The translations under genes and the position numbers were made by a program. Positions 6,558-61,351 of a DNA stretch of 64,000 nt are shown piece by piece. The first letter of the stretch is position 1; every line of letters starts with the position of its first letter. The notes beneath the pieces were generated by a model that made no database searches, was not told the origin of the DNA, and saw only the letters and a program-made list of their open reading frames with translations. Where the stretch lies: the IMG/VR virus record IMGVR_UViG_3300026521_000471, positions 62,001 to 126,000 of that record. The stretch is one strand, 5' to 3'.

Positions 6558-6671
6558 TATAATTTTAAGGTTACTTTTTGTATAATATCAATATAAGTTT
6601 TAGTTTCAACTATTTTAAATAGTAGTTAGAAGATTTAGGTTTAAGAAATTAGACCTTCTACTAAGACTTAT

Positions 6672-8331: not shown

Positions 8332-8422
8332 GGAGAGTTGGCAGAGTTGGTCGATTGCACCGGTCTTGAAAACCGGCGACGTGTAACAGCGTCCGAGAGT
8401 TCGAATCTCTCACTCTCCACCA
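8332..8422 (+). tRNA. tRNA-Ser(UGA)
   Basis: Type II cloverleaf, CCGGT-CTTGAAA-ACCGG, encoded CCA. Confidence 0.95.
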
Positions 8423-8426
8423 TTTT

Positions 8427-8511
8427 GGAAGCGTAGTCAAGTGGTCAACGACGGCAGACTGTAAATCTGCTCCCTATGGGTTCGGTGGTTCAAATCCACC
8501 CGCTTCCACCA
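8427..8511 (+). tRNA. tRNA-Tyr(GUA)
   Basis: GCAGA-CTGTAAA-TCTGC, V arm, CCA. Confidence 0.95.
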
Positions 8512-8920: not shown

Positions 8921-8997
8921 GGACAATTAACTCAGTTGGTTAGAGTCACCGCCTCATAAGCGGGAGGTCGCTGGTTCGAGTCCAGCATTGTCCACCA
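8921..8997 (+). tRNA. tRNA(CAU), probably Ile2 (lysidine type, reads AUA)
   Basis: CTCATAA loop, GTCGCTGGTTCGAGTCCAGCA Ile2-like T arm, CCA; leader A uses ATA four times. Confidence 0.85.
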
Positions 8998-9673: not shown

Positions 9674-9702
9674 TAGTCTTCCCTTTTTTGTATAATTTAA
9701 TT

Positions 9703-9768
9703 AGAAGGACAGCAACTCATACTTCCCGAGTTGTTTCTTAATTGGTGCAAACAATTAAGATTACTTCT
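9703..9768 (+). ncRNA. Conserved three-way-junction RNA antisense to an endonuclease 5' UTR (copy 1)
   Basis: AGAAG-GACAG-[stem]-TT-TCTTAA[stem]TTAAGA-TTA-CTTCT, repeated with covariation at 28593-28655; TGTATAAT just upstream. Confidence 0.6.
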
Positions 9769-10265
9769 TTATTACTCTTATTTATACTTATTTTTAATCA
9801 ATTTTAGAAACTTTCTAATATTTTCAAAGGAATTTAAGTTTATTTTAATATATATTATTGTATAATATTATAAATAAAAAGGTTATTAAAAATTATATTA
9901 GCCCACCATTAAAATAATTGATTGCTTAAAGATTTCTTTGAAATTTTTCAGCAGTTAATAGAAATATTAACTTTAGCAAATGAGCCCAAGTATCACCCGA
10001 AGCTATTAAGTAGGGATTGCCTCTCCATTGGAAGATGGCTTGGGAGCCGATTTAAACCGAAGTACAACTCTGTACAAGGACAGTTTTAAAACTGGTGGTT
10101 ATGTGCTTTATTCCTAAAAGCAATGAGTAAAAATTAAGCGTGAAAAATAAAACTCAAAAATAAGGACAGAAAGATGAATTTTACATTTAGTAAGTCCTAC
10201 TATAAATCAGTCTAATTCAATAGGGTTTGTAGTAGGACGTTAATATAATAACAGAAAACTACAAA

Positions 10266-10341
10266 CCCGTTGAAGCTAACTAAGTAGAAGCGCTGGTCTG
10301 AAAAACCAGAGGAGTTGGAGCGTTACCAACCAGCGGGACCA
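10266..10341 (+). tRNA. Non-canonical tRNA-Phe(GAA)
   Basis: Full cloverleaf and CCA, CTGGT-CTGAAAA-ACCAG; no GG in the D loop, T loop AGCGTTA. Confidence 0.75.
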
Positions 10342-10352
10342 TTTTAATTAAT

Positions 10353-10430
10353 GGGACCGTCGAATATCCGGTGACTGTTCGTTGGACTGAAAATCCAAAG
10401 GTAGAGGTTCGACTCCTCTCGGTCCCACCA
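10353..10430 (+). tRNA. tRNA-Phe(GAA)
   Basis: TTGGA-CTGAAAA-TCCAA, T loop TTCGACT, CCA. Confidence 0.9.
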
Positions 10431-18580: not shown

Positions 18581-18620
18581 TTAAGAACATTTATTGTATA
18601 ATTACAGTAATTAAAAAGAA
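18581..18620 (+). promoter_or_regulatory. Promoter of tRNA array 2
   Basis: TTAAG-N11-TATAAT; 30 nt identical to the array-1 promoter. Confidence 0.7.
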
Positions 18621-18733
18621 TTTAACATTTTTTAAAAAGAATTTCAAAATTTTAGCTAATTTAAGGTTAAAAAAAGAAAACTTTTTGTATAATGTTATAA
18701 ATAAAAATAAAAATTAAATCAAGGAGAATAGTA

Positions 18734-18841
18734 ATGAAAACTATTACACTACAAAATAAAAATATTACTACTATTCATAATGCCAATAAACCGGCGGTCC
18801 TTGAAATTATTAAACAAGAACAGGATAAACAGATTCTGTAA
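18734..18841 (+). CDS. Leader peptide B (35 aa, MKTITLQNKNITTIHNANKPAVLEIIKQEQDKQIL)
   Basis: AAGGAG RBS; 33 of 34 non-Met residues are amino acids served by array-2 tRNAs; Ile only ATT, Leu only CTN. Confidence 0.8.
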   Translation: MKTITLQNKNITTIHNANKPAVLEIIKQEQDKQIL

Positions 18842-18935
18842 GAGATAATTAATCTTATCTTTTACAGAATTGGTTTTCTGTGAGAGATAAGATATTCTAA
18901 ATATCTATTCTCCCACAAAACCTTTTCAATTTTTA
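18834..18935 (+). promoter_or_regulatory. Attenuator-like switch B
   Basis: Box 1 (18834-18848) and arm 3 (18876-18893) both complement arm 2 (18852-18869); C-rich tract follows. Confidence 0.75.
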
Positions 18936-18990
18936 ATATTATTTTAAGATAATTAATTGTATAATTCACTATATCAATTAAGGATTTAAA

Positions 18991-27960: not shown

Positions 27961-28251
27961 ATGAAAATATTACAAAAATGGTGGAATGTTATTAAAAGCT
28001 GGTTAAGTCTTTCCGATGAAAGTAGTACACCTCCTAAAAAAGCGAAAACTAAATCTAAAAAGAAAGTGAAAAAAGATGATTATTTAACTATGATTCTAGA
28101 AGCAAAGAAAACAGAAGATGAAGTTGGTAAAAGAAGATATATGTCAAGATTAGCCAACAATCTTACAAAAGCTATTGCATCAAATGATTCATCAGCAATA
28201 GATATAGCTGAAAAACGTATTAGAAACTATCTAAATAAAAGAAAGAAGTAA
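27961..28251 (+). CDS. Hypothetical basic protein
   Basis: ORF track; GGAG RBS. Confidence 0.65.
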   Translation: MKILQKWWNVIKSWLSLSDESSTPPKKAKTKSKKKVKKDDYLTMILEAKKTEDEVGKRRYMSRLANNLTKAIASNDSSAIDIAEKRIRNYLNKRKK

Positions 28252-28265
28252 TTTTCTTTCTTCTC

Positions 28266-28562
28266 TTACAACTCTCTTATTTCCCAACCTTTTAGTTTTC
28301 TCTTTGAAGCATAAATTACAAAACTATTATCATTCATTTTAAAAGCAGCATACAATAGTTTATTATTATCAGAATGAATCTTCATTAATAATAAATGTGC
28401 TATCATGTGTTCTTCTGGAAATAATGCAACTTTGTTATTATTAGCATCTGTACCATCAATACATTTTGGAATTATGTGATGTACTTCTCTGTATTCGGAT
28501 TTAAGGATACTTCTATTTTGAGCTTTTGAGATAAGTTTCTCGTAATGGAGTTTGTAGTTCAT
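28266..28562 (-). mobile_element. HNH homing endonuclease (short or truncated)
   Basis: MNYKLHYEKLI..EVHHIIPKC..G.D..NN.V.L..EEH..AH.LL; start moved to ATG 28562. Confidence 0.75.
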
Positions 28563-28592
28563 TTTGTCAACCTTTAATTGTATAATTATTGA

Positions 28593-28655
28593 AGAAGGAC
28601 AGTTAGGAGTCAACCCCTAATTTCTTAACTATTCGTAGTAGTTAAGATTACTTCT
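28593..28655 (+). ncRNA. Conserved three-way-junction RNA (copy 2)
   Basis: Same junction sequence as 9703-9768 with different, still pairing stems. Confidence 0.6.
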
Positions 28656-28755
28656 CTTTCTACTATTCTTTATACTCCAAAACTACTAAATTACTTAACT
28701 TTCCAAAAAAAAATTGTAAAATAAAATATATTTAATATAAACATAAGGTCAAAAA

Positions 28756-32363: not shown

Positions 32364-34214
32364 ATGAGAACAAACTATAATTTAGAAATTAGAAAAAATT
32401 ATATAGATAAGGAAGTTACGGTTTCGGGGTGGGTTAATTCAATCCGTGACCATGGTGGCGTTTACTTTATTGATTTAAGAGATACTTCCGGTATTGTACA
32501 AATTGTTGCAAATCCAACTTCTTTAACAGAAGATGAATATGAAAAGTATCACGCTTTAAGAGATGAGTGGGTAATTGAAGTTACTGGTAAAGTTAGACTT
32601 CGTGGAGAAGGTCTTGAAAATCCAAAATTATTAACTGGTGAAATTGAAATTGTTGCAGAAGATTTAAAAATTCTAAGTAAAGCAAAAACATTACCGTTCC
32701 AACCTGGAGACGAATCTGTTAATGATGATTTAAAGCTTAAATACAGATATTTGGATATGAGAGATAACAAACTGCAGGATACTCTTACTAAAAGAAGTGA
32801 TATGGCGTTTAATATCAGAGTTGCTCTGCATAACGAATTAGATTATGCGGAAATCGAAACTCCAATCTTAATGAAGTCATCTGAAGGTGGAGCAGAAGAA
32901 GTATATGCCACTTCTAAACTATTTCCTGGAGAATTCTATTCACTGCCACAATCACCACAATTATATAAACAGTTACTTATGATTGGTGGGAGAGAAAAGT
33001 ATTATTCATTTGCAAAATGCTTTAGAGCTGAAAGTGCTCGTAAAGATAGAAACATCGAATTCACACAAATAGATATGGAACGATCTTTTTCAGATAGAAA
33101 TGGTATTTTAAAAGATGTTACTAAAGTTTTAACTGCAGCTTTTGAAACAACCAATGTCGATTTTGATAAAATTAATAATGATGTTAGAGAAACAGTCCGG
33201 TGGCTTGATAGTATTAGTATTGAAGGTGAAATTGATTCTTCAGCTGATATTTTAATTCCTATGATCAAATACAATGACGCATTAAACTACTTCGGTAGTG
33301 ATAAGCCGGATTTACGTTTCAAAATGTCATTGATTGAAGCTAAGAAACTTTTTATTAATACTGATTTTACGGTTTTTAAAGATATTGCTAAAAAGGATAA
33401 TACAGTTGTTAAAGCTTTAGTGGCTAAAAATGCAGACTATCCAGACAAACTATCTAAAAAGAAAATTAAAGATTTAGAAAAATTTGTTAGTGAATTTGGA
33501 GCTAAAGGTTTAGCTTATTTTCAAATGAAAGAAGAAGGCCTAAAAGGTCCTTTAACTAAATTTCTAAAACAAGTGGATTTAGATTTAATCCAAATTGAAT
33601 GTGAATTAGAAGTAGGTGATATTGTTTTCTTTGGAGCAGGTGATAAAGATACCGTTTTAGATTACATGGGTCGACTAAGAATTAAAATAGCAGAAGAGTT
33701 AAATTTAATTAATGATAAATTCATACCATTATTTGTTACTGATTTTCCTATGTTTGAAAAAGGTAAAGACGGCACAATTAAAGCTATGCACCATCCATTT
33801 ACAGCACCTATAATGGAATCTTATACAAATTATTTAAATGATGAATGTGACCTTACAGAAATTCTTACTGATAGTTATGATCTTGTTTTAAATGGTGTGG
33901 AATTAGGTGGTGGTTCAGTAAGAATTTATGATGAAGAGTTACAAGAAAATATATTTAAGATTATGGGGCTTACTGATGAGGAAATAAAAGAAAAATTTGG
34001 TTTCTTTACAGAGGCTTTACAGTATGGTACTCCGCCACATTGTGGATTTGCTTTTGGTTTTGATAGATTAGTTTCACTATTATTAAAAAAAGAAACTATT
34101 AGAGAAGTAATAGCATTTCCTAAAAATCAAAGTGGTCTATGTCCTATGTCTGAATCACCAAATAAACCGGATGTTAATCAATTAAAAGAATTAGGTTTAA
34201 GAATAAAATCTTAA
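32364..34214 (+). CDS. aspS: Aspartyl-tRNA synthetase, bacterial type, probably non-discriminating (Asp/Asn)
   Basis: RDHGG..FIDLRD OB fold, LPQSPQLYKQLLM, CFRAE, EFTQIDME, GAD insert, PPHCGFAFGFDRL. Confidence 0.97.
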   Translation: MRTNYNLEIRKNYIDKEVTVSGWVNSIRDHGGVYFIDLRDTSGIVQIVANPTSLTEDEYEKYHALRDEWVIEVTGKVRLRGEGLENPKLLTGEIEIVAEDLKILSKAKTLPFQPGDESVNDDLKLKYRYLDMRDNKLQDTLTKRSDMAFNIRVALHNELDYAEIETPILMKSSEGGAEEVYATSKLFPGEFYSLPQSPQLYKQLLMIGGREKYYSFAKCFRAESARKDRNIEFTQIDMERSFSDRNGILKDVTKVLTAAFETTNVDFDKINNDVRETVRWLDSISIEGEIDSSADILIPMIKYNDALNYFGSDKPDLRFKMSLIEAKKLFINTDFTVFKDIAKKDNTVVKALVAKNADYPDKLSKKKIKDLEKFVSEFGAKGLAYFQMKEEGLKGPLTKFLKQVDLDLIQIECELEVGDIVFFGAGDKDTVLDYMGRLRIKIAEELNLINDKFIPLFVTDFPMFEKGKDGTIKAMHHPFTAPIMESYTNYLNDECDLTEILTDSYDLVLNGVELGGGSVRIYDEELQENIFKIMGLTDEEIKEKFGFFTEALQYGTPPHCGFAFGFDRLVSLLLKKETIREVIAFPKNQSGLCPMSESPNKPDVNQLKELGLRIKS

Positions 34215-35867: not shown

Positions 35868-37421
35868 ATGGCTAAAACTAAATTAGTAAATGGTGTTAAA
35901 CTTGATTATGTTGCCGGTTCTTTTGCCAGTTTTGCCAAAATTAATAATTCTAATAAAGAACTGAAAGAAGAAAATATTAAAGATTATATAGGACTTATGA
36001 AATTTATAGAAGGTAAGCTCAAGGGTTATATAAATGTTAGCACTTTATTTAATGCTTATCAAGAAGAAGGGGATGGTCGATCTATAAAAGAACATAATAA
36101 TTTTGGTTATGATAAAGTTTATGCTGATTCTGGTGGATTACAAGTCCTTACAGCAGGTAAAACTATCAATGATGAAGTTAAAGAAAAAGTTTATACAGTC
36201 CAAGCTAAATATTCAGACTATGCTATGACATTTGATGAAATGCCTATAATGATAGCTAAAGACTTAGGTAAAAAATCAAAAATCGGCGATTATGGACAAG
36301 TCTTTGTTGATGAGTTAGTAGAGAAAAATGCGGAATTATCTGCAATGCATATTCAAAAACAAATAGATATGTTTGAATCATTAAATACATCCACTAAAAT
36401 TTTACCAATCATACATGGATATGACATTGATTCATATTTACGTTATGCTAAATCTATTTTTAATAACCTAGATCATATAGGACATCATATTCAAGGGATG
36501 TCTATTGCATCGTTAAGTGGTCATGCGGATAATAAAGTGGGGATAATGAAAGTATTTGACTTTGTGCCAAAGATATTAAATAGTGGTGAGATTAATCCTC
36601 AATATTTAGAACATATTCATTTACTAGGTGTTGCATCTTCACAAAGAATAATACCTATTATTATGATGATTAAAAAAGGATTATTACCAATTAAAACACT
36701 TTCATTTGATAGCACCGCAATAACAAAAGCATACACATTTGGTAGAGCATATCAGACCATAGAAGAATATAAAAATCCGAGGGACTTTAGTACAGAAGTA
36801 ACATTAAAAAGTTATAAAAATAAAGAGTTTCCAAACATAAAACAATTATATCAGAGTATGTATGATACGTTTAAAGATTATGAAAATTTTATGTTTGATG
36901 ATTGGGAAGATATAGCAAAACATTCACCAAATAATGGCGATAAACGGGCTTTAAAAGATCAATATTTGGAAGAAGGCTTAGAATATCAAAGAAAATACTT
37001 ACAGCAAGTAAGGATAGCTAATCTATATCATCATTATACTTATGTTTCCATGCTAGAAGGCTATATTGACGATGAACTTAGTATAACAGAATTGTTTGGT
37101 TATAATAAAACTGTTGAAACTATGATGCAATCATTTGAGAGTGTAAACACACTTGAAGAATTATCAGAAATGTGCGAATATTTTTATAATTTTGCTAAAG
37201 TCGGTCGAACAGATTTAAGAATTAAAAAAGTAAAAACGGTTAAAGAGTTTAAAGAAAAATATGAAGAAGAAGGTATTGATGTATATGCGGAATTAGGTAT
37301 CGACAAAGACGTTGAAATCCTAAGTGAAGAATTAAAAAAACCTTGGATTAAATCTTCAATAAAAAGAGCAAAAGGGGAAGATTATCCTCATGGTGAGGAA
37401 CCAACCAATGCACTTTTTTAA
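35868..37421 (+). CDS. TGT-fold guanine transglycosylase paralog 1 (DpdA-like)
   Basis: YADSGGLQ, FDEMP, HIHLLG, SFDST; ends TNALF*. Confidence 0.8.
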   Translation: MAKTKLVNGVKLDYVAGSFASFAKINNSNKELKEENIKDYIGLMKFIEGKLKGYINVSTLFNAYQEEGDGRSIKEHNNFGYDKVYADSGGLQVLTAGKTINDEVKEKVYTVQAKYSDYAMTFDEMPIMIAKDLGKKSKIGDYGQVFVDELVEKNAELSAMHIQKQIDMFESLNTSTKILPIIHGYDIDSYLRYAKSIFNNLDHIGHHIQGMSIASLSGHADNKVGIMKVFDFVPKILNSGEINPQYLEHIHLLGVASSQRIIPIIMMIKKGLLPIKTLSFDSTAITKAYTFGRAYQTIEEYKNPRDFSTEVTLKSYKNKEFPNIKQLYQSMYDTFKDYENFMFDDWEDIAKHSPNNGDKRALKDQYLEEGLEYQRKYLQQVRIANLYHHYTYVSMLEGYIDDELSITELFGYNKTVETMMQSFESVNTLEELSEMCEYFYNFAKVGRTDLRIKKVKTVKEFKEKYEEEGIDVYAELGIDKDVEILSEELKKPWIKSSIKRAKGEDYPHGEEPTNALF

Positions 37422-37785
37422 TAAAATTAAATCATTTATAAAAGGATTAGAATTAACTAAATTCGATAAAATCTTCTTTATAGGATATATTAGTTTATGG
37501 ATATATTATTTATTTAGTGGAATGAGTTATTTAACTGCTGGCGGTATATTATTAATTCTTGGAGCATGGCTAGTTTTTAAAGGTGAAATTTTTGTTGCAA
37601 CTTTAAACTATGTTATAGCCGATATAATGTGGGTTTTAAATGCTATTAATATAGGTGATAATGAAGGTACTATTTTCATTATAATTGGTATGCTTTTAGG
37701 TATTGCAGCAACTTATAAAATGCAAATTGGATCTTTAGCAAAATCATTAAAAATAGAAAAAAATTGTAAAATAAAACTAAAATAA
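37408..37785 (+). CDS. Membrane protein
   Basis: Multiple hydrophobic segments; start moved to ATG 37408. Confidence 0.6.
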   Translation: MHFFNKIKSFIKGLELTKFDKIFFIGYISLWIYYLFSGMSYLTAGGILLILGAWLVFKGEIFVATLNYVIADIMWVLNAINIGDNEGTIFIIIGMLLGIAATYKMQIGSLAKSLKIEKNCKIKLK

Positions 37786-37797
37786 AAAAGGATTAAT

Positions 37798-38562
37798 ATG
37801 ATACCTATTATGGAAATGTTTGGCCCAACTATACAAGGTGAGGGTGCAAGAAGTGGTGTAATTTCATATTTTTTAAGAGTTGGTGGGTGTAATTTTACTT
37901 GTAAAGGTTTTGGTGTGGCATATACCGATCCTGATGGCAATGAAAAGTTTGGATGTGATAGTTATTATGCCGTTGACCAAAAATTTAAGAAGTCATGGGA
38001 TTTTTTAAACTATAAAGAAATTGTTAATAAAATGAATATAATTCTGAATAAAGGGGCTCATGGTATTTTTAAACCTGATATAATTATAACCGGTGGAGAA
38101 CCACTAATGTATTGGAATAATGAAGACTTTCAAAACGTATTAATTTACTATATATCAAGAGGTTATAAAATCACGATTGAAACTAATGGTAGTATTGATA
38201 TTGATTTCACAAAAGATTATCAAAAAGAAATTATGTTTTCTATGTCGGTTAAATTAAAAAATAGTGGTGAAGCAGAACATAGAAGAATTAATATAAAAAA
38301 TCTTACTAATATACTTGAAAATTCTAAATATAGTTATTTTAAATTTGTTATTGGTAATGATATGAATGATGTAGAAAAAGAAATTATAGATATTTTAGAC
38401 AGCATTCCATATTATACTGATGTTTTTGTAATGCCTATGGGAGAAACTACCGATGGGATTGAAAAACACGCTTTAAAAACTGCTGAATTAGCTATTAAAA
38501 ATAATTGGAAATATAGCGATAGATTACATATTAGATTATGGAATGATAAACCGGGTGTTTAG
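37798..38562 (+). CDS. queE: 7-carboxy-7-deazaguanine synthase QueE (radical SAM)
   Basis: EMFGPTIQGEG, FLRVGGCNFTC...CDS, ITGGEP, IETNG, RLHIRLW. Confidence 0.92.
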   Translation: MIPIMEMFGPTIQGEGARSGVISYFLRVGGCNFTCKGFGVAYTDPDGNEKFGCDSYYAVDQKFKKSWDFLNYKEIVNKMNIILNKGAHGIFKPDIIITGGEPLMYWNNEDFQNVLIYYISRGYKITIETNGSIDIDFTKDYQKEIMFSMSVKLKNSGEAEHRRINIKNLTNILENSKYSYFKFVIGNDMNDVEKEIIDILDSIPYYTDVFVMPMGETTDGIEKHALKTAELAIKNNWKYSDRLHIRLWNDKPGV

Positions 38563-38579
38563 ATTTAAGAGGAAAATAT

Positions 38580-39929
38580 ATGAGTAAATTTAAAAATACA
38601 GAACTAATTGTCGATTATGTTCTTTCAGGATTCGGAGCTTCATTTCGATTAGGCTCACCAAATGAAGCTTACGCTAGAGGTGTTGCAGAAGAATTATTTA
38701 GTTCTACTAAATTTTTAGAATCAGAAACTAGAGGCGATAATATTGAAATGAGTGCATTGTTTAATGCATATACAGAAGATAGAATGGCGGAACAGTTAAA
38801 TGGGTTTAATCTTAATTTAAGAGATCTATATACTGGGGGTATGTATGTTGATTCTGGAGGATTACAGGTTTTAACACAAGGCAAAACTATCGATGAAGAA
38901 ATGAGAAAAAAAATATATAAAACTCAGGCTTCATATGGTGATTTTGCTATGAGTTTTGATGTTATTCCTTCTGAATTTGTAAATGGCGAAAAAATATATT
39001 TTCCGGAGCGAGTAGCTGATGCGGGAACACAAGCTGGAAAAAATTTAATTGAACAAATTAAAGCATTTAAAGAATACAATACCTCTTGTAAAATCATGCC
39101 AATCATTCAAGGATTAGGTGAAAGTGACATGGATTTATATGCTAATAATATGTTTAGCCAACTATCTAAAGATGAATTGGATTATATCACAAGTGTCGCT
39201 TTTGGTGGTGGTACAAGTGGTTTTGAATTTTTAAATAGAATGATGAATGCTCATCATTCAAAAATTTTATCACAAAAAATGAATCATGTGCATTTACTAG
39301 GGATTACAGGCTTTTCTAGACTATTACCGCCTATTATTGCAGCAATGAATGGAATTCTTCCAGATGTTAATAGAATTTCTTTTGATAGTACAACAATATC
39401 AAAGACTTATGTATTAGGGATGGTATGGCCAGAAGTTGAGGATGTTATTTCTGGTAATGTTAAAGCTGGTGCAAGTACATCGTTAGGCAAAGTAAGAAAT
39501 AAAACTGTTGAAGCTCATTATGAAAAAATGTGGAATTGGTGGAAAAAAAATCCTAATAATATTTTTGATGGTGTTGAAGATCTTTTAGAACATTCCGTAT
39601 ATAACTCTAAAGGTTTTACAACTGGATACCAACAAACAGAAAATTTATCATTAGAAGATGGAATCAAAACAATTACCCAAAAGCATGTTTTTGTATATTA
39701 TAACACATATAATTTTATCAATATTTTAAAAGGATATATAAAAGGCGAGGTACCATTATCCAACTTGTTAGGTAAGAATCAAAAAGGTATTTTCTTATTT
39801 GAACAATTAGAGAGTATTACTGATGTAAACGATTATAATGAGTGGTTTATAGATGTTAAAAAACATATAAAGATTGATGTTCCATCTGTTGGTTCAGATA
39901 AAGGACAATCAACAAATATTTTATTTTAG
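38580..39929 (+). CDS. TGT-fold transglycosylase paralog 2
   Basis: LFNAYTE, YVDSGGLQ, FDVIP, HVHLLG, SFDST; ends TNILF*. Confidence 0.8.
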   Translation: MSKFKNTELIVDYVLSGFGASFRLGSPNEAYARGVAEELFSSTKFLESETRGDNIEMSALFNAYTEDRMAEQLNGFNLNLRDLYTGGMYVDSGGLQVLTQGKTIDEEMRKKIYKTQASYGDFAMSFDVIPSEFVNGEKIYFPERVADAGTQAGKNLIEQIKAFKEYNTSCKIMPIIQGLGESDMDLYANNMFSQLSKDELDYITSVAFGGGTSGFEFLNRMMNAHHSKILSQKMNHVHLLGITGFSRLLPPIIAAMNGILPDVNRISFDSTTISKTYVLGMVWPEVEDVISGNVKAGASTSLGKVRNKTVEAHYEKMWNWWKKNPNNIFDGVEDLLEHSVYNSKGFTTGYQQTENLSLEDGIKTITQKHVFVYYNTYNFINILKGYIKGEVPLSNLLGKNQKGIFLFEQLESITDVNDYNEWFIDVKKHIKIDVPSVGSDKGQSTNILF

Positions 39930-41519
39930 GTGATATTGATGGCTACAAGTAAAAAACAAATAAATGGTATTACTTTAGATTATGTTTCTGGTTCATTACG
40001 ACCTTTCTTAAAAATAGGTTCTGGTAGTACAGATGCTATAAAGCATGAGGGAGTTGAAGATTTTAAGAAACTACTAGATTGGTCTCAAACACATTTAAAA
40101 GGTTACTTTGTACTATCAACACTTTTTAATGCGTTTCAAGAAGAAAAAGATGGTAAAGTATTAAAAGAAGAAAACAAACTTAATCATGACGCAATTTATG
40201 CCGATTCTGGTGGATTACAAGTCCTCACTAGAGGATTAGAAATTACAGATGATATTAAATTGAAAGTATATGATACTCAAGCTAAATATTGTGATTTTGC
40301 CATGACATTCGATGAAATGCCTTTAAAAGTTATAGAAAATCAAGATCAATTTGGTAAATCAATTATTGATAATAACAGGGTTGTTCATATCAAAGAAATG
40401 GTAGGTATATCTGCAAAAAATTCAGCAGCACATATTCAACAGCAAATTGATGTATTTGAAAAACTTAAGACGAATACAAAAATATTACCTATTGTACATG
40501 GTTTTAGTGAAGAAACATATATCGAATACGCCGAAACAATTATGAAAAACTTACATAATATTAAGGAACATATCCAAGGTATGGCTATTGCTTCATTATC
40601 AGCATCAGCGGATAATAAGGTAGGTATAATGAAAGTTTTTGATTATGTACCAACTCTTATGAATGCTAAAGAGATAAAAGAAGAGTATAGACAACATGTC
40701 CACTTACTAGGAGTAGCTTCATATCAAAGAATAATTCCAGTTATGATGATGGCTAAAAAGGGTATTTTTGATACCGTTAAAAGAATTTCATTTGATAGTA
40801 CTGCACTTACAAAATCATATACATTTGGGCGTGTATATGCTAGTGTTGAAGAAATGAAAAATCCTAAAGATTATGAACCTCTTTTATCATTAAATCATTG
40901 GAAAGATCCTCATTCAAAAAATATTAGACAATTTTATAATAACGTACACAATTTACTCAAAGACTACCCCGATTATATTTTTGAAGATGTTGAAGATTTG
41001 ATGAACCATTCACAAAATAATGGTGAGAAATTAAAAGTTAGTGAACAATTTAAAAAATATGGAACTGAATATGAAAGAAAATATCTGGCTCAAGTGAGAT
41101 ATAATAGCATTTATAATATGATTCAGTATTTAAGTGTTATTGAAGCTTATTTAGAAGATGAACTGGCTGTAGCTGATATATTCTCATATAATGGGACAGT
41201 AAGATTTATGTTTGAAACCTTTGAGCATAATGCACATACAAAAGAAGATTTTAAAGAGATGTGTAACTATTTTTATACAACGGCTACAACAGGAAGAACG
41301 AACCTCAATTATATAATAATGGACACTTTAGAAGAATTTGAAAAAAGTGAATATGGAAATAATCCCGATGTAAAATCGGACCCATTAGCCGAATTAGGAG
41401 TAGGGGAAGTACCAAAACATGAAAAAGGGTATGTTCGACCAGATCTTTTAGCTCGACGAGCTAAAAGAGCACCTAGAGATTTTAAAGAAGATGGAAATCC
41501 ATCAGATTCTCTTTTTTAA
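39930..41519 (+). CDS. TGT-fold transglycosylase paralog 3
   Basis: YADSGGLQ, FDEMP, HVHLLG, SFDST; closest to paralog 1; ends SDSLF*. Confidence 0.8.
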   Translation: MILMATSKKQINGITLDYVSGSLRPFLKIGSGSTDAIKHEGVEDFKKLLDWSQTHLKGYFVLSTLFNAFQEEKDGKVLKEENKLNHDAIYADSGGLQVLTRGLEITDDIKLKVYDTQAKYCDFAMTFDEMPLKVIENQDQFGKSIIDNNRVVHIKEMVGISAKNSAAHIQQQIDVFEKLKTNTKILPIVHGFSEETYIEYAETIMKNLHNIKEHIQGMAIASLSASADNKVGIMKVFDYVPTLMNAKEIKEEYRQHVHLLGVASYQRIIPVMMMAKKGIFDTVKRISFDSTALTKSYTFGRVYASVEEMKNPKDYEPLLSLNHWKDPHSKNIRQFYNNVHNLLKDYPDYIFEDVEDLMNHSQNNGEKLKVSEQFKKYGTEYERKYLAQVRYNSIYNMIQYLSVIEAYLEDELAVADIFSYNGTVRFMFETFEHNAHTKEDFKEMCNYFYTTATTGRTNLNYIIMDTLEEFEKSEYGNNPDVKSDPLAELGVGEVPKHEKGYVRPDLLARRAKRAPRDFKEDGNPSDSLF

Positions 41520-59725: not shown

Positions 59726-61351
59726 ATGAGTAAAAAGAAAATTAAAGATTTAATTATTGGCACGGAAGCTAGAGATGCATTAGCACAAGGAGTAGAATCA
59801 GTTGTTAATGCAGTTGGTACTACACTTGGACCAAAAGGTCAAAATGTATTAATTGATAGTGGACATCCTATGGCACCTTCAACAATCACAAAGGACGGTG
59901 TAACAGTTATTAGAAATCTTCAGTTATCAGATTATACAGAAAATTTAGCAGTAAAAATTCTAAGACAAGCATCAGAAAAAACTGTTGATGAGTGCGGTGA
60001 CGGTACAACTACTACTGCTATTTTGGGTGGAGCAATTTATACAGAAGGCCTTAAGCATTTAGCAAGTGGAGCTAATCCCGTTATGATTAAAAGAGGTATT
60101 GATAAAGTAGTTAGTAAACTAATTGAATCTCTTGATAATATTAAAGTTGATGTGACTACTGATGATCAAATTAGAAATGTCGCGACAATTTCTGCTAATG
60201 GTGATGAAGAAATTGGTAGTCTAATTGTTCAAGCTATGGATAAAGTTGGGAAAGATGGAGTTATTACTGTTGAAAATGGTAAATCTATGAATGATGAATT
60301 AGAAACAACTGATGGAATGAAAATTGATAGAGGATTTGCTAGTGCATACTTTGTTACTAATCCTGAAAAAAATATCGCTGAATTACAAAATCCATTAATT
60401 CTTGTTACTGATTATGAATTCCAAACAGCAAATGATGTTGTTCCACTTTTAGAAGCAGCACATAGTAAATCAAGACCATTATTAATTATCTCTGAAGGTG
60501 GAAGTGCAGAAGCATTACAAACTCTAATCGTTAATAAATTGAAAGGTGTTATTTCTGTTTGTGCTATTGATGCACCTGGTTTTGGTGCTAGAAAAAAAGA
60601 ATATCTAAAAGATATTGCTGCAATGGTAGGAGCTGAGTTCGTATCTGCTGATTTAGATATTTCTATTGAACAAATTACAGCCGATATGATGGGTTCATGT
60701 GAAAAAGCGATTATATCAAAATTTGATACAACATTAGTAAATAGTCAACCTAGAGGAACATCAAAAGATGATAGATTAGCGGAGTTACAAGGTCAAATCA
60801 AAGTTGCTGATAATCAATATGATATTGAATTTTATAAAGAACGTATTGCTAAAATGACTGGCGGTGTAGCTGTTATTCGAGTTGGTGGTGCTTCAGAAAC
60901 AGAAGTTGAAGAGAAAAAAGATAGGGTCGATGATGCTCTTGGTGCTACTCATGCAGCAGTTGAAAGTGGTATTGTAATTGGCGGTGGATGTGCATTATTA
61001 CATGCTGCCGAAAGTGTAAATGTTAAAGATTTAAATATTGCTAATTCTGATGAAGCTGCGGGTGTACAAATTATATTAGAAGCTATCAAACAACCACTTA
61101 AATTAATTGTTGAAAATGGTGGAGGAAGTGGAGATTTTGTATCTGAAACTGTTATTAGAAATACTGATATAGAAGGGTATGGATTTAATGCAGCGACTGA
61201 AGAGTATGGCGACCTTTTTGAAATGGGTATTATTGACCCAGTAAAAGTAACAAAATCAGCTCTTAAAAATGCTGCATCAGTTGCTACATTACTACTAACA
61301 TCAAAAACTATCTTAATGAAACAAAATCAAGCAACAGCTGTTCATGGCTAA
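59726..61351 (+). CDS. groEL: Chaperonin GroEL
   Basis: TLGPKG, ITKDGVTV, GDGTTT, APGFG, GGG, GIIDP. Confidence 0.97.
   Translation: MSKKKIKDLIIGTEARDALAQGVESVVNAVGTTLGPKGQNVLIDSGHPMAPSTITKDGVTVIRNLQLSDYTENLAVKILRQASEKTVDECGDGTTTTAILGGAIYTEGLKHLASGANPVMIKRGIDKVVSKLIESLDNIKVDVTTDDQIRNVATISANGDEEIGSLIVQAMDKVGKDGVITVENGKSMNDELETTDGMKIDRGFASAYFVTNPEKNIAELQNPLILVTDYEFQTANDVVPLLEAAHSKSRPLLIISEGGSAEALQTLIVNKLKGVISVCAIDAPGFGARKKEYLKDIAAMVGAEFVSADLDISIEQITADMMGSCEKAIISKFDTTLVNSQPRGTSKDDRLAELQGQIKVADNQYDIEFYKERIAKMTGGVAVIRVGGASETEVEEKKDRVDDALGATHAAVESGIVIGGGCALLHAAESVNVKDLNIANSDEAAGVQIILEAIKQPLKLIVENGGGSGDFVSETVIRNTDIEGYGFNAATEEYGDLFEMGIIDPVKVTKSALKNAASVATLLLTSKTILMKQNQATAVHG

Follow-up and report, generated by a model that had tools for sequence, protein, structure and literature searches.

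In the IS10 RNA-OUT/RNA-IN pair and in type I toxin–antitoxin systems, a convergent promoter gives rise to a structured antisense RNA, a loop of which pairs with the 5′ end or ribosome-binding site (RBS) of the mRNA and blocks its translation. The homing-endonuclease genes of T-even phages (I-TevI, I-TevII, I-TevIII, segB and Aeh1 mobE) have RBS-sequestering hairpins; there the mask is intramolecular, forms in same-strand read-through transcripts and is lost in late transcripts (PMC2988022). In phages P1 and P7, exposed loops of the c4 antisense RNA pair with short sites that cover the RBS (Citron and Schuster 1990, as cited in PMC12197685), and in cyanophage S-PM2 the CfrI antisense RNA is encoded, according to the summary in PMC12197685, between psbA and an endonuclease gene (Millard et al. 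2010). Here we describe an RNA element found twice in a 64,000-nt stretch of viral DNA (the window: bases 62001–126000 of the 224,467-bp IMG/VR virus record IMGVR_UViG_3300026521_000471; G+C 27.9%), each time upstream of a minus-strand nuclease gene. The element is real, and so is the co-variation between one of its loops and the RBS of the adjacent nuclease gene; it probably serves as a structured antisense repressor of nuclease translation, in which a conserved scaffold would present a gene-specific anti-RBS loop.

On the + strand both copies fold into a three-way junction built of P1 (5 bp), GAC, P2 (7–8 bp), P3 (9 bp), UUA and P1′, with z = −3.9 and −2.7; their reverse complements adopt the mirror-image fold with z = −2.6 and −1.9. 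An earlier interpretation made from the letters only (the sequence-only reading) had recognised the two copies at the positions given in Table 1 by the blocks that they share, and a pattern search returned exactly these two matches against 0.00 expected from shuffled sequence; neither the regular expression nor the covariance model detected a third copy in the 224,467-bp genome. Its statement that P2 and the tips of P3 differ and yet pair also holds, P2 being wholly different between the copies and paired in both, with three distal P3 pairs behaving likewise, and so does the layout it described, in which the element follows directly on a + strand motif and lies between the nuclease RBS and a late-like promoter. 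The conserved block is wider than it had recognised, extending over ~100 nt from TTGTATAAT to TATTTATA/TCTTTATA (9779–9786; 28667–28674). Its argument that ‘GCAA’ and ‘UUCG’ loops favour the + strand fails, however: the loops are the 7-nt GUGCAAA and UUCGUAG (or CGU), without the pairs that close GNRA or UUCG tetraloops. Since P3 loops vary freely across the family, they are uninformative on strand.

The wider family was collected with a covariance model built from the two window copies and then by scanning a DNA pattern made from the invariant blocks, matches being checked by the model. Such a search for a link to endonuclease genes had been proposed along with the original observation, and it yielded 41 more distinct copies on metagenome and virus contigs, nearly all beside homing-endonuclease-like genes, giving a family of 43 distinct sequences with the window copies included. 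The covariance model located the element, in the same layout and at 45–66 bits, upstream of three homologues of nuclease 1 (59–68% identity) on unrelated metagenome contigs. The pattern scan of JGI metagenomes matched 56 loci, from which came 44 model hits (the window's own two among them), and several metagenome contigs carried two copies each; of 8 matches in IMG/VR, one was true. As a control of specificity, 596 Gb of prokaryote genomes gave 14 pattern matches, none of which passed the model. The exact two-block pattern had no match in IMG/VR, and the loose pattern GGACAG..TTCTTAA..TTAAGA was abandoned, having produced at least 118 chance matches there, none with the fold.

The scans were prefiltered by pattern. 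The alignment (39 distinct rows) bears out the covarying junction that had been postulated from two copies. Paired cells make up 97.1%, and of the 19 pairs 15 show changes in both partners, amounting to 219 cells. Covariation scores 0.768; shuffled alignments give 0.249, with 0 of 500 reaching the observed value, and alignments with slid partners give no more than 0.137. Nearly every one of the 43 copies has the junction as its minimum-energy fold. The joining bases GGACA, UUUC and GAUUAC are nearly invariant, and the search pattern did not contain UUUC or GAUUAC. P1 covaries only as purine–pyrimidine pairs of one orientation, A-U or G-C and almost never U-A or C-G, so that its 5′ strand and the adjoining junction form a Shine-Dalgarno (SD)-like purine run (AGAAGGA, AAGAGGA, GAGAGGA). 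Scaffolds are more alike within a contig than between contigs, even where the nuclease families differ (0.77 versus 0.63).

A few further features of the element were seen along the way. A conserved flank box of the form (C/G)AAACTTTC(A/C)TA lies ~20 nt past the TATAAATA block in ~17 of the 43 family loci, while other cassettes have a second flank type, AAATCACTTTTTTCCTATATTTTA; the GAAAGTT box is not enriched elsewhere in the genome, and a role as a general promoter element of the phage was therefore rejected. Sequencing run X2 contains a minor DNA variant of window positions 28596–28687 (depth ~8 versus ~175 for the main form) with an identical P2, 13 differing positions and one deletion across P3 and the right flank, and then unrelated sequence. 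Contigs of several assemblies end inside the element (L033 stops at 9711).

The strongest pointer to function is the relationship between the P2 loop and the translation initiation region (TIR) of the neighbouring nuclease gene. On the + strand the loop is perfectly complementary to its cognate nuclease mRNA over a stretch at about −10/−11 to −3/−4 of the start codon; this target comprises the 3′ half of the SD and the spacer, and its sequence varies between genes. Among the 43 copies the match between a loop and its own TIR has a median length of 7 nt (range 3–10), compared with a mean of 3.9 nt for non-cognate TIRs; 0 of 10,000 permutations reach the observed mean (Mann-Whitney p = 1.7e-23), and the predicted duplex averages −9.6 kcal/mol for the own TIR and −3.9 kcal/mol for non-cognate ones. 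The P3 loop, used as a control, bears no relation to the TIR (3.49 versus 3.54), which also disposes of P3 as a second targeting loop. The element thus has what is expected of a cis-encoded antisense repressor, an exposed loop complementary to the TIR of its target.

Individual loops illustrate how closely the two sides follow each other. The copy 1 loop contains CUUCCC, facing GGGAAG in the mRNA, with a predicted duplex of −10.4 kcal/mol, and 13 of the 310 gene TIRs in the genome match it at 6 nt; the copy 2 loop contains GUCAACC, facing GGUUGAC, with −11.7 kcal/mol, and nuclease 2 provides the only 7-nt match among the 310. In L168, L159 and L190 the loops are UUCAACCU, UCUAGUUCC and UAAUUCCUUA, respectively, each directed at a complementary stretch of the TIR. 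A single-base co-change separates the window pair (TIR GGUUGAC, loop GUCAACC) from L225 and L182, which have GGUUGAG and CUCAACC. The possibility that P2 is a duplicate of the TIR flank was dropped; judged by eye, similarity continues for a few bases past the loop in the window copies only, and not in L168 or L159. A wobble test on loop–TIR mismatches was uninformative because the matches are almost always perfect.

The two strands are not equivalent with regard to this match. The minus strand holds two same-sense copies of the RBS stretch and no complement of it, and the co-variation can therefore serve only the pairing of a + strand RNA with the minus-strand mRNA. When the mRNA is folded by itself, the TIR is largely unpaired (mean unpaired probability 0.64) and thus accessible to a partner acting in trans. 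These observations bear directly on the alternative that the functional RNA is the minus-strand leader, in which the junction would stabilise the nuclease mRNA or tune its translation in cis, with the P2′ loop as a decoy or standby site, or with the 3′ strand of P1 sequestering the SD. Reverse complements do fold nearly as well as the + strand (mean −17.8 versus −18.6 kcal/mol) and are the more stable in 17 of 43 copies; the conserved TATAAATA would put the whole junction in the leader; the purines of P1 on one strand and pyrimidines on the other amount to an anti-SD-like bias; and for both window copies the long mRNA, in its minimum-energy fold, has CUGUCCUUCU paired to the SD. We nevertheless consider a leader function unlikely. 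Sequestration in cis is predicted in only 8 of the 43 mRNAs, which makes it a weak model, and neither a decoy nor a standby site needs an identity that runs through the non-SD spacer and changes with each gene, in an mRNA without any complement of its RBS. Such a function would also leave unexplained the promoter-like TTGTATAAT at fixed spacing on the other strand.

That motif is part of the phage's own vocabulary. The sequence TGTATAAT occurs 50 times on the + strand of the genome and 19 times on the − strand, with 25 expected, and mostly lies just upstream of + genes, followed by a short leader and an RBS; we therefore regard it as a common promoter motif of the phage. In every cassette, including the copies found through nuclease homologues alone, the + promoter ends 6–8 nt before P1, so that the first paired purine would be the start site, and the rare variants TGGTATAAT and TGTAAAAT both retain the −10 character. 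On the opposite strand, TATAAATA is usually found 24–43 nt from a start codon in this genome, but ~108 nt from it at the nuclease genes, whose leader would therefore be unusually long (~100 nt) and hold the mirror image of the junction. The TATAAATA block is kept in family members that were found without using it in the search.

Several points weigh against a + strand antisense repressor. Conservation of the promoter and TTTATAC blocks is independent in only 5–8 copies, because both blocks were in the search pattern for most members. The + fold has the greater stability in just 25 of 43 copies (p = 0.07), and wobble pairs give mixed evidence on strand, with 10 G-U against 1 A-C in model-fitted stems and 9 against 7 in P2 under a symmetric rule. 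In the one RNA library that contains the phage, contigs lie on the flanking + genes and none over 28224–28755, although contigs are no guide to absence, strand or transcript ends, and short RNAs mostly go missing. The junction has no terminator after it, and none precedes the right-hand neighbour; the + RNA may therefore be a leader of the gene that follows instead of a discrete small RNA. Finally, the + RNA would already overlap the whole nuclease leader, and why an extra anti-RBS loop should be needed is explained only by argument.

The missing terminator also fits a different use of the + promoter, which might mainly restore transcription of the downstream phage gene after nuclease insertion, the junction being a 5′ stabiliser and any antisense effect incidental. 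In 23 of 28 cases the gene to the right lies on the motif strand, its start usually following the element by 60–100 nt, and T4 nuclease cassettes carry promoters for neighbouring genes (PMC2988022). This explanation appears improbable to us: 26 of 41 right flanks contain a further promoter-like site, TGnTAnAAT, between the element and the next gene (in the window at 9859 and 28717), and a stabiliser needs no loop that matches the RBS of the opposite gene. A role at the DNA level we judge to be very improbable. Watson-Crick covariation is strand-symmetric, and the 5–10-bp sequence is present twice as a direct repeat ~45 bp apart, as might be the case for paired operator sites, or in a cruciform or recombination signal marking the cassette; the model for the former is the autorepression of I-TevI, whose operator overlaps its own late promoter (PMC2988022). 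Against this stand the tolerance of G-U pairs in P1 and P3, the constant position of the repeat at −10 to −3 and in a hairpin loop, even among nucleases whose DNA-binding domains are unrelated, and its shortness compared with the I-TevI operator similarity of 15 of 20 nt (PMC2988022). Searched with Rfam 15, whose families include hammerhead and other three-way-junction ribozymes, riboswitches and the c4 antisense RNA, the window gives tRNAs only at the gathering score, and nothing over the element at either locus at E ≤ 1. The other suggestion of the sequence-only reading, a self-cleaving ribozyme or guide RNA partner of the nucleases, has hardly any likelihood despite the compact three-way junction with its conserved GGACA, UUUC and GAUUAC and one variable loop, given that no Rfam family or known ribozyme core is matched (the junctions lack the hammerhead CUGANGA/GAAA core), the loop targets the RBS of its own gene rather than a homing site, and the partner nucleases belong to protein-guided families.

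Taken together, these results favour a structured antisense repressor, and they agree with the portable antisense-RNA cassette that the sequence-only reading had put forward: the element accompanies at least three catalytic classes of nuclease on many contigs, its P2 loop co-varies with the cognate RBS, and a + promoter stands at a fixed distance. We propose that the element is a mobile regulatory cassette that would travel with free-standing homing-endonuclease genes that have inserted in antisense orientation between phage genes of a common direction, with two promoters opposed across ~90 bp. One of them, TATAAATA, would drive the nuclease mRNA, whose ~100-nt leader would include the mirror image of the junction, and the other, TTGTATAAT, would drive a + RNA whose start is the first base of P1 or one adjacent to it. 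The scaffold of this putative RNA (P1, P3 and the junctions GGACA, UUUC and GAUUAC) would present the gene-specific P2 loop, which is predicted to pair with the nuclease mRNA at about −10 to −3, outside the overlap of the two transcripts, and thereby to block binding of the 30S subunit. Duplex formation and decay might come in addition from the full antisense overlap along the leader. The expected outcome would be low or delayed synthesis of the nuclease, and the + RNA may end as a discrete small RNA or continue as the 5′ leader of the next + gene.

We found no description of the element in the literature searched in full text. Compared with the T-even hairpins, the purpose would be the same, masking of the SD of a selfish nuclease gene that is fed by a late promoter of the TATAAATA type; here, however, the genes lie antisense to their neighbours and the complement of the RBS is in the loop of an opposite-strand RNA. 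A same-strand complement of the SD, as in T-even phages, is absent from the mRNA, and pairing between the SD and the 3′ strand of P1 is seen in 8 of 43 folds. With RNA-OUT and the type I antitoxins the element would have in common the antisense control of a mobile element's potentially harmful protein. Those RNAs overlap the site that they mask, whereas here the RBS lies outside the overlap and would be reached by a reprogrammed loop; moreover, the scaffold is common to unrelated genes, and no sequence or Rfam relationship was found. The likeness to c4 lies in a structured phage RNA, loop–RBS pairing and a specificity that comes from few co-varying bases, but c4 is processed from its target's own transcript, controls the immunity function ant/icd, differs in fold and genes and gives no Rfam match. 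CfrI, as summarised in PMC12197685, is likewise an antisense RNA of a T4-like lytic phage linked to a free-standing homing-endonuclease gene; the account there does not mention a three-way-junction scaffold or an anti-RBS loop, and the two are compared here by description. Judged from these comparisons, what is most likely new relative to known antisense control is a shared scaffold with a re-targetable loop acting beyond the overlap.

The genes next to the element are of the kinds that had been recognised from their translations, one PD-(D/E)XK and one HNH nuclease on the minus strand, as PHROG and domain matches show. By its domains, nuclease gene 1 belongs with the free-standing homing-endonuclease-like genes; it lies in a tRNA cluster (tRNAs at 8332–8508, 8921–8994 and 10266–10427), a location that recalls T4 segB in the T4 tRNA region. 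Comparison with solved structures gives zinc-finger matches and weak endonuclease I matches, and homologues are found in T4-like and ViI-like phages. Over its final 41 bases the gene overlaps the + strand tRNA at 8921–8994, so that the C-terminus, ...GLEPATSRL, is encoded by the antisense of the tRNA. Nuclease gene 2 has only the N-terminal third of its family, the full-length members of which range from 238 to 280 aa, and is therefore probably a truncated remnant; its relatives on L221 and L220 are 57–68% identical, full length (269–280 aa) and accompanied by the cassette. The cassette of nuclease gene 2 is intact despite the truncation, its TIR and P2 being identical to those of the full-length L221 copy.

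The same picture emerges from the family as a whole. An open reading frame (ORF) on the opposite strand starts 12–31 nt from the promoter in all 43 distinct copies, and those from the pattern scan were found without any protein information. When 39 distinct ORFs were compared with PHROGs, 15 matched phrog_314 (GIY-YIG type), 10 phrog_15137, 8 phrog_655 (HNH), 7 phrog_3339 and 5 phrog_12131, all five annotated as homing endonuclease or endonuclease, and 8 of 10 ORFs that had not been classed by eye also matched such families. The neighbouring genes are mostly on the motif strand (18 of 20 on the left, as well as the right-hand ones counted above), and the unit is therefore an antisense insertion of a nuclease gene between phage genes that share one direction. 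Cassette-bearing HNH relatives have neighbourhoods unrelated to that in the window. With a nuclease domain and a DNA-binding module, an intergenic and sporadic location and one nuclease family in differing neighbourhoods, these genes appear, as far as their domains tell, to be free-standing homing endonucleases; no empty-site allele of either window locus was recovered. The GIY-YIG nuclease beside the cassette on L172 begins with Met and 13 threonines (L172:6478–6519), which come from a tandem repeat of the hexamer GGTTGT right after the start codon, and a close relative on L228 has three threonines only at that place.

Table 1. Positions in the window of the two cassettes, their parts and the adjacent nuclease genes.
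Feature	Position	Strand	Remarks
Nuclease gene 1, 239 aa	8954..9673	-	Two C2H2 zinc fingers and a T7-endonuclease-I-like PD-(D/E)XK domain; phrog_15137, E 6e-35
TIR of nuclease 1	9674..9687	-	mRNA AAAAAAGGGAAGACUA-AUG; GGGAAG is the complement of 9678-9683
TTGTATAAT, putative + promoter -10/-16 element, copy 1	9688..9696	+	P1 begins 6 nt later
Three-way junction, copy 1	9703..9768	+	Fold, family covariation; covariance-model score 120.7 bits
P1, copy 1	9703-9707/9764-9768	+	
J1/2 GAC, copy 1	9708-9710	+	
P2, copy 1	9711-9718/9728-9735	+	
P2 loop AUACUUCCC, copy 1	9719..9727	+	CUUCCC (9722-9727) complements GGGAAG in the nuclease 1 RBS
P3, copy 1	9736-9744/9752-9760	+	
J3/1 UUA, copy 1	9761-9763	+	
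TATAAATA, putative late-type promoter facing nuclease 1	9779..9786	-	6.9-fold enriched within 80 nt upstream of genes in the genome
Conserved flank box GAAACTTTC	9807..9815		At nearly the same distance in ~17 of 43 cassettes
Nuclease gene 2, 98 aa	28266..28562	-	N-terminal HNH part only; phrog_655 positions 27-103 of 343
TIR of nuclease 2	28563..28577	-	mRNA AAAGGUUGACAAA-AUG; GGUUGAC is the complement of 28566-28572
TTGTATAAT, putative + promoter element, copy 2	28578..28586	+	Genome-wide motif
Three-way junction, copy 2	28593..28655	+	Fold; covariance-model score 115.2 bits
P1, copy 2	28593-28597/28651-28655	+	
GAC, copy 2	28598-28600	+	
P2, copy 2	28601-28607/28616-28622	+	
P2 loop AGUCAACC, copy 2	28608..28615	+	GUCAACC (28609-28615) complements GGUUGAC in the nuclease 2 RBS/spacer
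P3, copy 2	28623-28631/28639-28647	+	
UUA, copy 2	28648-28650	+	
TATAAAGA, late-promoter-like, facing nuclease 2	28667..28674	-	Aligns with TATAAATA of copy 1 and the family
Flank box TAACTTTCC, copy 2	28696..28704		Counterpart of the copy 1 box

The record encodes 23 tRNA genes, an aspartyl-tRNA synthetase (32364–34214), a GroEL-like gene (59726–61351) and a QueD-like gene. The record has no close cultured relative, and megablast and blastn searches of cultured phages with the element and its surroundings returned nothing significant; an 826-aa protein of the window has no relatives in IMG/VR or cultured phages, and among 24 loci related to the QueD-like downstream gene none is syntenic and none has the element. 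Near-identical DNA is present in hydrothermal-vent, epibiont and biofilm runs, and near-identical strains from other assemblies showed no variation. The + strand carries almost every gene of the window, with the two nuclease genes as clear exceptions. A third nuclease-like ORF, G000:C1:142277–143014 (80277–81014 in window coordinates, outside the window), covers phrog_314 positions 176–445 and lacks the N-terminal catalytic part; it runs antisense to the genes on either side, and TATAAATA lies 33 nt upstream of it, but the junction element is absent.

Promoter-like sequences fall into several classes across the genome (in the window, for example, at 6579, 6851, 8072, 9859, 11675, 15858 and 18595–18958). 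One or two TTTAAG boxes often stand before the motif TTTTGTATAAT, and a second class pairs CTTGACTT with TATGGCATAAT or TGTTATAAT, while TATAAATA represents the late-like class. The arrangement with TTTAAG boxes resembles sigma-70 promoters of Campylobacterota. Together this suggests a T4-like temporal programme and a Campylobacterota host. Elsewhere in the window, three paralogous genes (517, 449 and 529 aa) follow one another at 35868–41519, all of them phrog_10773 (function not known), with the aspartyl-tRNA synthetase and GroEL-like genes nearby.

How phages tolerate selfish nucleases is understood for a few T-even genes only, by way of their same-strand RBS hairpins. The element described here points to a second, modular solution, in which one RNA chassis would serve GIY-YIG, HNH and endonuclease-I-like genes, its loop being rewritten for each gene. 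It adds an uncatalogued RNA family, with ~43 distinct members in these searches, and provides an annotation marker for antisense-inserted nuclease cassettes in AT-rich phages, in vent and related metagenomes. More tentatively, and at odds that we put well below even, the cassette could be a fully programmable silencer, a fixed junction chassis re-targeted to each nuclease by rewriting 6–10 nt of one loop and perhaps recognised by an RNA-binding protein of phage or host that is dedicated to it, at which the invariant junction bases and the homogenisation within genomes hint. If this is true, the element would be reusable as a very small programmable repressor and, for the phages themselves, would be an antitoxin-like module of self-restraint that enables their genomes to accommodate otherwise harmful nucleases, whatever the family.

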